64,000 nt of DNA from Blastocystis sp. Blastoise. Taxonomy: Eukaryota; Protista; Bigyra: Opalinata. Numbering within the stretch: position 1 is the first letter of the stretch; every line of letters starts with the position of its first letter. The position numbers were made by a program, and so were the translations under genes. The notes beneath the pieces were generated by a model. That model was not told the origin of the DNA. It was given only the letters and a program-made list of their open reading frames with translations, and did no database searches. Of this stretch, positions 19,211 through 28,941 are shown one piece after another. The DNA is taken from assembly GCA_039096225.1 (NCBI GenBank), contig JBBPEB010000023.1, positions 682,001 through 746,000 of the forward strand, written 5' to 3'.

Positions 19211-22200
19211 ATGAATTCTTCGTCGAACTCTTCCGTAGCATCTCCTACTTCTGATGCTACGTCCCCTCAAAAATCACAAAAAACATTTGTTAGAATAAAA
19301 AATGAAATCAGAAAAATTGATTTTCCTATTGGTGTTCATCCTTCTAGTACAATCGATTCTTTTATTAATTTAGTTTCTTATATGTTAAAGGTATATTTGT
19401 ATCTAATATCCTGATTATTGCATTTAGCTTAAATACAATATGGTAGATTTGTCAGATTGCAAATTACTATTGAATGATCAAGTTTTAGAGGGTTCACGCA
19501 CTGTTGAATCCTATAAAATTCAAAATAATGATGCTTTATTTATTGAATTTAATGTATCTATTGATTGCTATTCTTATTTTTTAAAGTTTAAAAATACTAT
19601 ATAATTAAATCCAAATTATTATTTTATTTTAGAGATCTATTTATAATTATACTTGAATGAATATGATTATATATCTATGAATATATTATTTTAGTTATCG
19701 AATACTTCTCTTCCTTCTCCTGTCGACACTGTTGTGCGTATTGATCAAAAGACAGAACAATGTATGTTTTTTTTTAATAATTTAATAGAATATATATATA
19801 TTTTATTTATTTTTTTTATGGATTATTATTTTTTATTATCTACATGTTTTATAAGATATAATATATATATATAGTTCAAGAGATAAAAGGTTATATTGTG
19901 AATAATGATTATAAATCTATATTATTATTATTACAAAAGAAAAGTTCAAGTTTATTAGAAGTATCTGCTATAACTAAAATACTTGTCAATCAAGTGAAAT
20001 TATGTACCATTGATTCTGTCTGTATACAAATATTTGATTATATATTACTTCAAAGACTACCAGAAAGTATTATTATTGATTTATTAAAATGGTTTCAAGG
20101 AATGACTTTTAATTGTATATATATACATATTATTTTTATTTAATATTAGTATAATTATTTTTCTTGTGATTCATAATTATAATTATAGTTTTATATTATA
20201 TATATGATATTTATAAATGTAATAATAATAATATATATATATAGTACCAAATTCTAGTTTATGTATAAATATACTTGATATCTGTTATCGTGTATTTTCT
20301 ATATATTCCGATATACAAACTACACTTCAAACAGTCCTTTTATTAAGGAATATTATGATTACTAATAGTATAGACATAGTTTATTTATTATTTATATTTT
20401 ATTTAATATTTTTTATATTTTATTTAATATTATTTATATTTTATTTAATATTATTATATTTTTTTTTATTCTTTTTATTATATATATATATTATATTAAT
20501 TAATTTTATTTCTTTTCTTTATTGATAAATAGTTATAATCACGATTATTTATTTGTTTTCTCTATAGTTCCTGATTATCTCTGTGATTATATTAATACAA
20601 TTGACTTTAGAAATGGAGATAGTTATTTATATAAATTGATTAATAAAAATATAGATAATGTCAGTATTATTAATGAAATATTAATATGCCTCAATCATAT
20701 CGTGAATTCATGTATGTATTATATTATATTATATTATATTATATTATATTATATTATTATATATAGCTTCTGTCTATTCTACGAAAGTGACAAATAATAC
20801 CCATTTTTCTATTATTAATACTATTCTTTGTCAATATTATCAAAATAAAGATATTATTAAAAATATATTTTTACTTCTTGAATTGTTCCTTAATAATTGT
20901 ATATATTTATTTAGTTATGTTGATTGTTTATATAACAATTAGTATTAATTTATTATATATATATATATATATATATATATATATATATATAGCTTCATGT
21001 GGTCTTTATTTATATCAATCGAAGATATTTGAACAGATTCTCTTTATTCTCCAGATTCAGGATGAGTATATATTATCACGTACACTCATGTTCCTCGCGA
21101 AACTAGCTCCTTTACGTATATATATATATTATAATATAATATAATATAATATAATGAGAAATAAAGATATATATTACTATGTTTATTACTCTGATTTTAT
21201 TGTATATAAATATACAGTAAATAATATATCTATATATCTATATAGCTAATATAAATACATATTTATTTTATTATCGTATGTTTATTCCTCTTCTCCATAT
21301 TTGTACGGCGCATGAAAAATCAGCTGATATACTCATCTATGGAATTCTTATATTTAGAAATGTTGCTTCTGATAGTATATATATATATATATATTGTTTT
21401 TATTATATATTTTTTAATATGTATATGAATATACTATTTTATATGATGATATATAATATTATATTTTTTTTATTATATATTTTACTTTATATATCACTAT
21501 TATTTTAAAATAATAATAATAATAATAATAATATATATATATATATAGATGAGAGATGTATATATTTAATGAATGAAGGTGTTTTAGATTATTTGATTAA
21601 TCAATTACCCAATTTAACTACAAAGATTCATGTTGTGAATACTATTAATACCATTAGAAATATTATTACACATAGTAGTATATATAATATATATATAATA
21701 TATATATAATATATATATTATATATATATTTTACTTATTATTATGCTTATTATAAATTTTATAATATAAATATAACTAATTATTATAGGTTTATGTCAAG
21801 ATTATATATTAAGTACAAATATTCTTCTTGGATTTGAGTCTATTTCTCATCATTTTCCTCAAGAAGAAGATATATGTAAACAAATATGTCTTTCTTATCA
21901 AGAAATAGCTAAAACTAGTATATATATATTATTATTATTATTATTTATAATTATTATTAATATATATATATGTTTATATAACATTATATATATATAGATA
22001 AAGGAAGAGAACGTTTAGTAAATATGAAAGTTGACATTTTATTGGATGATTATTTAACACAATTCACGTGCTCTTCTGCAATGAAATCATTAATTAATAA
22101 TATTAAATCAGTTTTAAATGAAGAAGTTAAAAATGATAGTGCTTTTAGTAGAAGTATATATATTATATATAATAATAATAATAATAATAATAATAATAAT

Positions 22201-25200
22201 ATTATTATAATATAATAATAATAAAAGAGATTCTACTTTATATTATATACCTGCTCTCTCTATATATATATATATATATATATATATAGTTAATTCGATA
22301 TCGAATCTTGGTCAGACTCCTAAAGTGACTGTTAAACTGCGTAATCGTGCGTTAGTTAAGAAATCGAATGGCCATTATGTAGCTGCTACCCCTACTTCTA
22401 CTACTACTACTACACCTACAGATATCGTTACTTCTTCTTCTCCTATGTCTACTACGAATTCTACTACTACTCCTACTCATCAAGGAGTAACAATTTCTTC
22501 TTCTTCTTCTATTCCTTTATCTCCTACATCGTCTAATGCTTCTGTTGATGATATAGATATTAATAATTCTAATATTATATCTACAACACATGCTTCTCTT
22601 TCGAAAAGTCTTCCAAAGACTTCTTCTACAGGAACACAATCCTCTTTATCTATAGATACTGTATTAGAAACATTAGATCATAATTCATCAGCATCTTCAG
22701 ATAGTATATTAAAAGAAATTGAAGTAGGAAATCGTTTTAAAGATGTAGCTATGTCACAAGATAGTAATAAATCATTTAATGATATTATAGAAGAAAATGG
22801 ATTATCGATGGATCCTTCAGTTGCTACACCTATGAATAAAAGAAATAGTAAAGAAGATGAAGATGCTACGGATATACTTATTTGGACGTTAAAGAATCTA
22901 AAAAGAAGTACAAATGAAGAAGATATTATTACTTTAATTAGTATGATTAAGGTATTTATTAAAAAAGGTATATTATAGTATATTTTTTTTATTTATTATA
23001 TTTATTATATTATATTATAATATTATATTATATTTATTCTATATTATATTTATTGTGTTTATTATATTATATTATATTTATTCTATATTTATTCTATATA
23101 TATATATATATAGATGGCTCTTTGACATTACGTTATATTCGTCATTTCCGTTACATTCCTTCATACATTTCAAGTAGATTAGTGGCTTATAGTCATAACG
23201 AAAAGATGCACTTAGTTGGTATTGAAGTTATTAGTGCTTTTACTGAAGGTATATATATATATATATTTATATATTATTATGATTATGATTATGATTATTA
23301 TTATTATTTTATTATTATTATTATTATATTTATATATAGATGCGTTAACGAGTGTATACTTAGAGAATGGTGATACTATTGAAGTAATGAATAATGATAT
23401 AACTACATATATGAATAACATTAAAATATTAAATCCACTTCTGAATACACTTCTTATATTATCTAATAAACGTATATATATATATATTAATATGATTATT
23501 ATACTTATGATTATGATTATTATACTTATACTTATGATTATTATTATGATTATACTATATATATAGCTAAGATGAAGGAACGTTTCTTGTCTATTAGTGT
23601 TCAGATATCTCTTCAGGAATTGATTAATAGTACTATGAATAAGAATATCAAAACTACTGCTAATTGTATCATTCAAAACCTTGGTATTACACGTATATAT
23701 GTATTATAGTTATTTATTAGAATCATAATAACATATTTGAATAATAATAATAATAATAATAAACATAATAGTAATAATAAACATAATAATAATAATAGTA
23801 GTAATAATAATATATATATATATATATATATATAGGATCTGGTCCATCAGATGAAGTGACTTCTGATAATTTGGAAATTGAATTAAATCACAATATAATG
23901 CAAGTAGTATTAAGTCAATTAAAGAATGCTAATAGATCTACTAAAATCACTGTTCTTTTTGTTTTAAATCAATTATTCTATGATGAGAGTATATATATTT
24001 ATGTTTGTTATATATTTAATAAAATTGAATATAAGTTTTTATTATATAAATACTAAATAATATTAAATATATATATATTTAACTATATATATATATATAT
24101 ATATATATAGCTACATGGGCAATAAATGATTTCTTTGATCAAAATGGTATAACTGTCTGTTTAGATATAATGAAACAATTTTATAATGACAAAGAAATTA
24201 TTAAGAGATCTATTGATTTATTATATTCTCTTTCACATATAACTGCGGTTCTTAAAAGACTTGAATTTACAGGGATTTTAGAAGCATGTATACAGATAAT
24301 TAATATATATAAAGATCATGCTCAAATAATATCTTCTACTGTTGCTACTATTTATGATCTATGTAAACTAGGTATATATATATATATATATATATATATA
24401 TATATTATTATTATTATTATTATTATAATTTATATTATTATTATTATAATTTCTCTTATAATTTATATTATTATCTATAACACTAATAATATATATATAA
24501 CAATATAGATTCTATTTTATCCCGTTTAACGAGTAATTTATCGTTATTGAATTCACTTCTTTCTTATTATGTATATAAAGATAAAAAAGAAGGAAATGAT
24601 AATTTGAAATTATATGCATGTATTTGTGATTATATAATACGTATATATGTGTCATTAATAAAAGATGGTAAAACATCGAGATTACGATTAAATACAGATA
24701 TTATAGATGTTGTTATAGATACTATTAAGAAATATAAAGATATATATAATATGCAAGCGGGTTGTTCATTCTTACATATATTATCCACAGAAAGTCAATT
24801 AGCGGATAAATTAAGATTGAGTGATGCTATTAATGTATGTTTATCAACAGCAGTGACGACTGCTGCCTATAATGAAGATACAGAACAATTAATCGAAGCT
24901 ATTGATGCAGCTGGAGCTATTGCTCAAATGTCTAGTGTTAACATGCGTCATTTTGCTAGTATTCAAGGGTTTATGGTCATAGATAATATATTAGAGAAAA
25001 TGGATAATGAGAGAGTAGCAAATGCATGTATTTCAATTGTACGTAATTTAACTCTTTCTGAAGATATTAGCAGAGATATATTAAATACACAAGTATTAGA
25101 TAAATTAATTAAATGTATGAGTTATTATATGAAGAAAAATGATGAAGAAATCATAGAGAATTGCTGTGGTGCTATCCGAAATCTTACTGCTACTAGCTGT

Positions 25201-28200: not shown

Positions 28201-28941
28201 TATTATTATTATTATATACAACAAATATTAGTAATATATTCTTATAATAATTATATATTATTTATGATTATTATATTATATATCACATAAAATTATATAA
28301 CTATAAATTATTCTTATTTTTATAATTATATATATATAGAAACAGTAGATTTATTGATAAATAATAATATTTGTGAACTATTCTTTAGTATTCTCTGCAA
28401 ATCCATTCGAATTACTACTCTTAAACCTATTCTTAATGCTTATATATGCTTGTGTCATTATGGTATATTTATATTATTTATTATACTTATTATAAATTTT
28501 ATATTTATTATGCTTATTATAAATATTATAAATATTATAAATATTATATTTATTAAAAAATTATACTTTTTATAAATATTATATTTATTATAAATATTAT
28601 AAATATTATACTTTTTATAAATATTAAGCTTATTATCTTTATGACTAGATGCTTTCTTACGTCGTATTCAATCAAACAATGACCTTGTTCGTCGATTAAA
28701 TACATTAAGTGTGAATATATTATCAGATCAAGAAACTATATTATTATGTCAGAACTTACTACATCAAATATGTGAAAATGACTTCAAACGTATATTATTA
28801 TTATTATTAATATAATAATTATCTATATAATATATATATATATCATAATAATATATAGCTTCTCCTCCTGAAACAAATGATAATTTCGATTTAGGACCTG
28901 AACCTGATTTCCCGCCACCTGAAGTTCCCGCCAAATTATAA
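19211..28941 (+). CDS. Ubiquitin-like domain + armadillo-repeat protein, about 1970 aa, 35 exons
   Basis: Manually spliced 5913-nt CDS. N-terminal Ubl-like segment ([25 protein letters not shown]). ARM-type repeats such as [37 protein letters not shown] and [13 protein letters not shown]. Ser/Thr-rich linker in exon 22290-22967. Confidence 0.8.

Follow-up and report, generated by a model that had tools for sequence, protein, structure and literature searches.

Introduction

The armadillo (ARM) repeat (Pfam PF00514) consists of a short helix H1, a helix H2 and a long helix H3, and it is the building block of superhelix proteins such as beta-catenin, importin-alpha, Vac8 and the designed ARM repeat proteins (dArmRPs). 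Here, we analyzed a window of 64,000 nucleotides (nt) from the tortoise-gut strain Blastocystis sp. Blastoise (assembly GCA_039096225.1, contig JBBPEB010000023.1, positions 682,001 to 746,000 of the forward strand; all positions given below are those of the window unless another sequence is named). A gene at 19211..28941 specifies an ARM solenoid whose repeats are encoded almost exactly one per exon, with the exon boundaries at the junction between H3 of one repeat and H1 of the next. The gene product is like the known superhelix proteins in its 42-residue three-helix unit, but it holds ~38 units against 8-12 in those proteins, and it differs further by a probable N-terminal ubiquitin-like (Ubl) domain, a 225-residue linker and the fact that a single repeat exceeds the Pfam threshold. 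The glideosome-associated connector (GAC) of Toxoplasma, the ARM domain of LRRK2 and CAND1 resemble it as extended alpha-solenoids of comparable size, but TM-scores to these proteins are 0.25-0.44, there is no sequence relationship and the domain context is different.

Genes that encode solenoid repeats one per exon have been described in other lineages. The leucine-rich repeat (LRR) genes of Tetrahymena are reportedly of this kind, with frame-neutral exons and large multigene families. The candidate receptors of Ectocarpus with LRR or tetratricopeptide repeat (TPR) domains also form multigene families; their exons are equal in length, LRR exons that are intact but non-coding persist, and recently duplicated genes are nearly identical outside the highly recombined LRR domain (PMC3341825). 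The Blastocystis gene shares with the Ectocarpus families the arrangement of one solenoid repeat per frame-neutral exon, but it is single-copy, its exons have a mean identity of 18%, and exon order is fixed across lineages. We looked for the Ectocarpus-type traits at this locus, namely a multigene family, near-identical exons or introns, and variation of exon number or order among relatives, and found none of them.

A passage in PMC3995336, citing Street et al. 2006 and Bjorklund et al. 2010, states that the exons of tandem-repeat proteins often span multiples of whole units. Like repeat proteins that expanded by tandem exon duplication, the gene has one unit per exon, equal phase on both sides of the exon and a fixed cut point. 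It is set apart by its long clean run of 32 consecutive phase-1 introns, by its occurrence in a protist and by a unit that is an ARM repeat and not a zinc finger, EGF or immunoglobulin domain. Our literature search for a paper on a comparable ARM gene found none, which is no proof of absence. The gene belongs to a known class, that of symmetric-exon duplication repeat genes, and is not a new kind of system. We consider it probable, at roughly 80%, that the array arose by ancient tandem exon duplication and has since been frozen, which would make it an exceptionally clean natural case of a long solenoid built by duplicating one exon.

Gene structure, phase bias and expression

Two gene-finding runs agreed on one gene on the + strand, with 35 exons and 34 GT..AG introns. 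The first run was a start- and stop-anchored dynamic programming search and the second an unanchored gene finder applied to the whole window, with codon and intron models trained on the window. Introns 1 and 2 are in phase 0 and introns 3-34 are in phase 1 without exception; the 31 internal exons from exon 4 to exon 34 are all symmetric, of class 1-1. Twenty-two of them measure 123-135 nt, and exon 18 measures 261 nt. The parts of the gene are as follows (the ortholog mentioned was recovered from gut metagenomes and is described below).

Exons 1-3, 19211..19761, + strand (19211-19390, 19428-19553, 19695-19761): N-terminal region with a weak ubiquitin-like signal; introns 1 and 2 in phase 0.
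Exons 4-12, 19875..22153, + strand (19875-20114, 20245-20367, 20568-20711, 20767-20898, 20993-21115, 21246-21374, 21549-21677, 21789-21917, 21998-22153): N-terminal ARM-like block of 240, 123, 144, 132, 123, 129, 129, 129 and 156 nt, all phase 1-1.
Exon 6, 20568..20711, + strand: two candidate donors, at 20663 (annotated, 96 nt) and at 20711 (our model, 144 nt), each in phase 1.
Intron 10, 21678..21788, + strand: phase 1; no counterpart in the ortholog, whose exons 10 and 11 are fused.
Exon 13, 22290..22967, + strand: 678 nt; Ser/Thr-rich low-complexity linker without a Pfam match.
Exons 14-17, 23114..23988, + strand (23114-23248, 23340-23471, 23567-23692, 23836-23988): 135, 132, 126 and 153 nt; one ARM unit each.
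Exon 18, 24111..24371, + strand: 261 nt, as in the ortholog; holds two ARM units exactly, both in register.
Exon 19, 24509..25198, + strand: 690 nt, ~5 ARM units; the sole Pfam Arm match above cut-off; 690 nt in the ortholog too.
Exons 20-34, 25367..28789, + strand (25367-25495, 25590-25721, 25799-25972, 26156-26284, 26457-26582, 26640-26768, 26860-26982, 27031-27162, 27241-27369, 27472-27597, 27660-27782, 27876-28007, 28060-28188, 28340-28462, 28649-28789): 15 successive phase 1-1 exons with one ARM unit each, of 129, 132, 174, 129, 126, 129, 123, 132, 129, 126, 123, 132, 129, 123 and 141 nt.
Exon 35, 28859..28941, + strand: 83 nt; Pro-rich C-terminal tail and TAA stop.

A first-pass annotation of this DNA, made from the letters alone, had proposed the same layout, with 32 of 34 introns in phase 1, symmetric exons 4-34 and 22 exons of 123-135 nt. 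Our models and the NCBI annotation agree with it, and all nine exon coordinates quoted there were recovered by our model. The NCBI annotation coincides with our model at 33 of 34 introns, and the deposited 'hypothetical protein WA158_007935 [Blastocystis sp. Blastoise]' (P0001) is identical to our conceptual splice except at the donor of exon 6. Our model has a coding sequence of 5913 nt, against 5865 nt in the annotation (NCBI WA158_007935, 1954 aa). In the ortholog, exon 6 is 144 nt long and aligns without gaps to the window version that ends at 20711, so the annotated donor at 20663 is probably an annotation error. As judged from this alignment, the NCBI model of exon 6 probably lacks 16 residues, or else both donors are used.

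Two introns that are removed in the annotated model consist of simple sequence. Intron 20 (25496-25589, 94 nt) is nearly pure GT(AT)nAG, and intron 23 (26285-26456, 172 nt) is a (TTA)n run, with (TTA)n at 26290-26448.

The phase bias stands far above the background. The other predicted genes of the window have 33/22/15 introns in phases 0/1/2, and a 200-kb sample of contig C1 of the same genome has 97/125/65 predicted introns in these phases. At the resulting background phase-1 frequency of 0.31-0.44, the probability of at least 32 phase-1 introns among 34 is 2e-14 to 5e-10. A background similar to the level seen here would cancel the observation; the sampled genes, with 31-44% of introns in phase 1, lie far below it. 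No other gene with more than one repeat-sized 1-1 exon was found in the 264 kb made up of the window and the C1 sample. The neighboring gene, which had served as an internal control in the first-pass annotation, was confirmed by Pfam as RPB2. The count of 14 introns in phases 8/2/4 given there was not matched by our model, which has 15 introns in phases 9/2/4.

RNA evidence was available as assembled contigs of low depth that cover 19491-25490 only. They came from one RNA-type run (X1) and one poly(A) gut metatranscriptome (X2), each of which holds parts of the gene. Spliced RNA-type contigs confirmed the junctions 19553/19695, 19761/19875, 23471/23567 and 25198/25367, and RNA contigs joined exons 13-14-15-16 and exons 7-8 in order. 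The strain represented in X2 differs from the window at seven positions over 21054-25440, all seven of which are synonymous third-position changes. The gene is expressed and, to judge from its coding sequence, is under purifying selection. That the layout might be an artefact of ab initio prediction in AT-rich DNA, to which a crude gene finder trained on the same window would be prone, is already effectively refuted: the independent NCBI annotation has 33 of 34 introns in common with ours, RNA contigs bear out four of the predicted introns and the order of six exons, the ortholog shows this structure although its intron sequences are unrelated, and the differences in the related strain are all synonymous.

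One armadillo repeat per exon, in one register

The unit exons share a common register. When the 22 unit exons were compared ungapped from their first residue, their similarity exceeded that of random-boundary controls with z = 7.4, and none of 1000 controls reached the observed value. A MAFFT alignment of the same exons runs from end to end and is nearly gap-free. Searched against the PDB, a 42-position profile of the 22 exons matched designed armadillo repeat proteins (E 4e-12) and also importin-alpha. Positions 25-41 of this profile fall on helix H3, so the exon end is the end of the canonical ARM module. Exons that were not part of the profile training (13, 17, 18, 19 and 34) also end at a unit end when the profile is run on P0001. 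The two units of exon 18 span residues 954-995 and 997-1038 of P0001, which makes exact the earlier estimate of about two units for this exon, and the last ~40 residues of exon 13 match the ARM unit profile weakly, with an in-register end.

Pfam Arm (PF00514) matches P0001 at 31.0 bits, with a cut-off of 20.6, over residues 1229-1266, which form the last repeat of exon 19. This match covers positions 8-41 of the Pfam profile and stops two residues short of the exon end. Exon 20 alone scores 16.3 bits, under the cut-off, with its residues 4-37 aligned to profile positions 6-37, and scans of single exons gave no individual Arm match for most exons. Single diverged repeats are too weak to be detected by Pfam one exon at a time.

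We then placed the exon boundaries on predicted structures. An AF2 model of P0001:1229-1954, built on a two-sequence alignment with a mean pLDDT of 67 and hence of moderate confidence, shows helices of 8-9, 11 and 14-18 residues in repeating succession. All 16 boundaries follow a helix of 11-18 residues, and 14 of them follow a helix of 14-18 residues. Nine of the 16 mark the start of an 8-9-residue helix to within one residue, and a tenth is the first residue of a longer helix; five lie in the loop or tail after H3, and the last falls inside H3, two residues from its end. Only two boundaries lie deeper than one residue within a helix, where 62% would be expected (P = 7e-5). In the model of the N-terminal part, helix starts coincide with the split residues 406, 449 and 492, with 322 in the lower-confidence part. 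With Foldseek, beta-catenin, Vac8 and an engineered ARM protein were matched at a probability of 1.00 and E ~1e-5, with TM-scores of only 0.3-0.5; further fold neighbors are plakoglobin, the LRRK2 ARM domain, Toxoplasma GAC and CAND1. The proposal of one ARM repeat per exon is therefore in agreement with the exon profile, the register tests, AF2 and Foldseek, and the structure-prediction check that had been suggested for it places the boundaries at the same H3/H1 junction and not at random positions.

Conservation of the exon array

A homology search with full-length P0001 returned only the protein itself, a search for contigs encoding it returned none, and the protein atlas held generic ARM-like clusters only, at chance-level scores. 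A search with exon 19 led to a 68%-identical open reading frame (ORF) in metagenomes (P0002), whose cluster lies on contigs of up to 28.7 kb. The ortholog was found in full on the gut-metagenome contigs L003 (45% G+C) and L004-L006 (41% G+C); its introns measure 30-39 nt, and its protein is ~50% identical to that of the window gene overall. No named ortholog was present in the searched collections, in which the relatives are metagenome or transcript sequences.

The exon array is conserved between the two lineages. In L004, phase-1 introns share their aligned residue with window introns 4-9 and 11-33, which amounts to 29 of the 30 placeable introns (introns 4-33), and intron 1 is also kept. The exon lengths of L004 nearly match those of the window: 123, 144, 132, 123, 126, 258, 153, 657, 135, 132, 126, 150, 261 and 690 nt in the first half and 129, 126, 168, 129, 126, 129, 120, 132, 129, 126, 123, 132, 129 and 123 nt in the second. 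Among the phase-1 introns 4-33, L004 lacks a counterpart of intron 10 alone (258 = 129 + 129 nt). Introns 18-22 are likewise conserved in residue and phase in L003. The contigs L004, L005 and L006, from three independent samples, are 99.7-99.9% identical over 7.2 kb with no gaps, and the gene upstream is syntenic (window 17037-18536 and L004:2244-2721, 36-39% identity in two pieces).

The 32 consecutive phase-1 introns at the H3/H1 junction persist despite ~50% protein divergence and although the introns have changed completely in length and composition. The gene can thus serve as a handy marker for intron loss or gain and for the evolution of intron size within Blastocystis, with the fused exons 10+11 as one clear event. 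For the tortoise isolates of Blastocystis described in PMC12129017, a G+C content of 21-23% and introns that are longer and more variable are reported. A more distant homolog, P0004, which comes from a transcript contig with 41% G+C and is 1996 aa long, aligns collinearly with P0001 over the central and C-terminal blocks (~23% identity), which indicates that the long array is older than the split between the window and L004 lineages.

Two features of the L004 introns are recorded here. The counterpart of window intron 7, at L004:4455-4487, appears to be of the GC-AG type, 33 nt long and in phase 1. A further seven L004 introns are multiples of 3 in length, contain no stops and can therefore be read through by ORF callers.

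Test of exon-cassette diversification

The first-pass annotation had gone on to propose an active cassette system, in which exons are skipped, duplicated or swapped by splicing or by recombination at (TA)n intron ends and yield a combinatorial binding solenoid. Its premise holds in principle: any subset of the internal exons could be dropped in frame (31 of 31 are 1-1 symmetric, in one register), and ARM solenoids tolerate a varied number of modules, as in designed ARM proteins with 3-6 internal modules. Yet exon order, number and length are kept at ~50% protein divergence in a relative with short, non-(TA)n introns, and the three samples of the ortholog lineage differ by no insertions or deletions.

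We searched for traces of such activity within the gene and in the 33.3-Mb, 34-contig assembly. The exons are old and dissimilar, with a mean pairwise protein identity of 18% and a maximum of 35% among the unit exons. Comparisons within the gene gave no exon-exon similarity in DNA beyond short AT-rich chance matches, and no intron-intron similarity. Across the genome, exon 19 matched only its own gene, and 24 of the best 30 matches of the unit profile fell in the gene itself, with the rest weak (counts that are lower bounds). By these searches the gene is single-copy, with no paralog family found.

The introns of the gene are (TA)n-rich, and their near-identical ends had been put forward as substrates for recombination or alternative pairing. 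However, among 287 introns predicted on another contig, 63% have GT(AT)n ends and 72% have (TA)nG ends, compared with 85% and 82% in this gene, and the same introns in the relative, which has the same array, are ordinary short sequence and not (TA)n. The (TA)n ends are a genome-wide compositional habit and not mechanistic, which leaves their proposed role without support.

At the RNA level, contigs over 19491-25490 joined consecutive exons only, and no exon-skipping GT..AG joint was seen in these low-depth, assembled data. The two in-frame candidate donors of exon 6 would suit the cassette proposal, but given the fixed array, the lack of paralogs and the consecutive joins, we regard an active cassette system as highly improbable. 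A milder version holds that unit exons are used rarely or conditionally for in-frame skipping or alternative donors, with exon 6 as the first case. If true, one gene would yield solenoids differing in length and surface; we give this, too, very little credence. The first-pass annotation is thus partly supported, its structural half being right and its functional half unsupported. Its own caveat, that highly diverged exons may point to an ancient relic, is the better reading at 18% mean identity. Of the circumstances it had named for a mere duplication relic, we found a conserved exon order in the ortholog, intron 10 apart, and no gene family.

Two joints in X1 contigs depart from the gene model. 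One links 19873 to 20222, with GT..TA ends and 35 foreign letters between them, and the other links 21476 to 22494, with AT..AA ends and 1017 nt skipped. Neither is splice-like, and both are probably assembly chimeras in low-complexity sequence.

Origin of the array

Under the preferred reading, one ancestral exon flanked by phase-1 introns would have been duplicated repeatedly in tandem, by the mechanism known for class 1-1 modules. The duplications would be ancient, and the array would thereafter have been inherited as a fixed unit while the introns varied with the genome in nothing but length and composition (here they are (TA)n-rich and measure 37-200 nt, against 30-39 nt in the relative). 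Precise intron losses would account for exon 18 with its two units, for exon 19 with its ~five and for the fusion of exons 10 and 11 in the relative, the side on which intron 10 was presumably lost. For exon 18, one intron may have been lost early, as the exon measures 261 nt in the ortholog also.

Alternatively, the repeats could have expanded in an intron-free form and later have gained introns independently in the corresponding loop of every repeat, for instance because of a proto-splice site or of preferential insertion into the inter-repeat sequence. The genome is intron-rich and intron 10 differs between the two lineages, both of which would fit later gains, but no conserved proto-splice motif is present at exon ends or starts, the split codon encodes many different residues, and the introns have no shared sequence. 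Moreover, 29 introns predate the split of the two lineages, and 32 independent gains in the same phase at the same junction are far less parsimonious than duplication of an exon together with its introns. We therefore find intron gain unlikely and favor ancient exon duplication.

Several points weigh against ancient, frozen exon duplication. The duplication origin is read from the pattern, and no intermediate with fewer repeats was found. The deepest homolog, P0004, is known as a transcript only and hence carries no intron positions. The background phases come from a home-made gene finder applied to 264 kb (0.8% of the genome) and not from the official annotation. One AF2 model was built from two aligned sequences (mean pLDDT 67) and the other from a single one (mean pLDDT 49), and thin contig RNA over 19491-25490 is compatible with rare skipping isoforms.

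Predicted protein

The protein is a large scaffold of ~1,970 residues with ~38 ARM repeats. An N-terminal ubiquitin-like domain is probable from weak profile matches: Pfam ubiquitin (PF00240) matches residues 29-98 with E 0.001 and 19.3 bits, against a cut-off of 25.4, and exon 2 alone gives E 0.0017, while the N-terminus has a pLDDT <50 in AF2. The description of the solenoid as Ubl-tagged has weak support, below the family cut-off. Exon 13 supplies a Ser/Thr-rich, disordered linker of 225 residues. The protein might act as a peptide-binding scaffold, whose putative Ubl domain might dock to the ubiquitin or proteasome machinery.

Other loci in the genome

Two further observations concern other contigs of the genome. 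At G000:C19:771305-784228, on the - strand, the ARM unit profile matches weakly within open frames that are 6580 and 3381 aa long. The genome thus also has a giant ARM-like gene with long intron-free stretches, so one repeat per exon is no rule for ARM genes in this genome.

On contig G000:C1, our gene finder predicted four copies of a multi-exon ORF, at 123069-124268, 129902-131182, 134485-135716 (- strand) and 147982-149105 (- strand). Three of the copies are near-identical, with proteins that differ only near the C-terminus, and one is diverged. Each has 8-9 introns, of which 7-8 are in phase 1, and exons of 46-186 nt. This ORF could be a repeat or transposon-borne micro-exon gene, or a prediction artefact.

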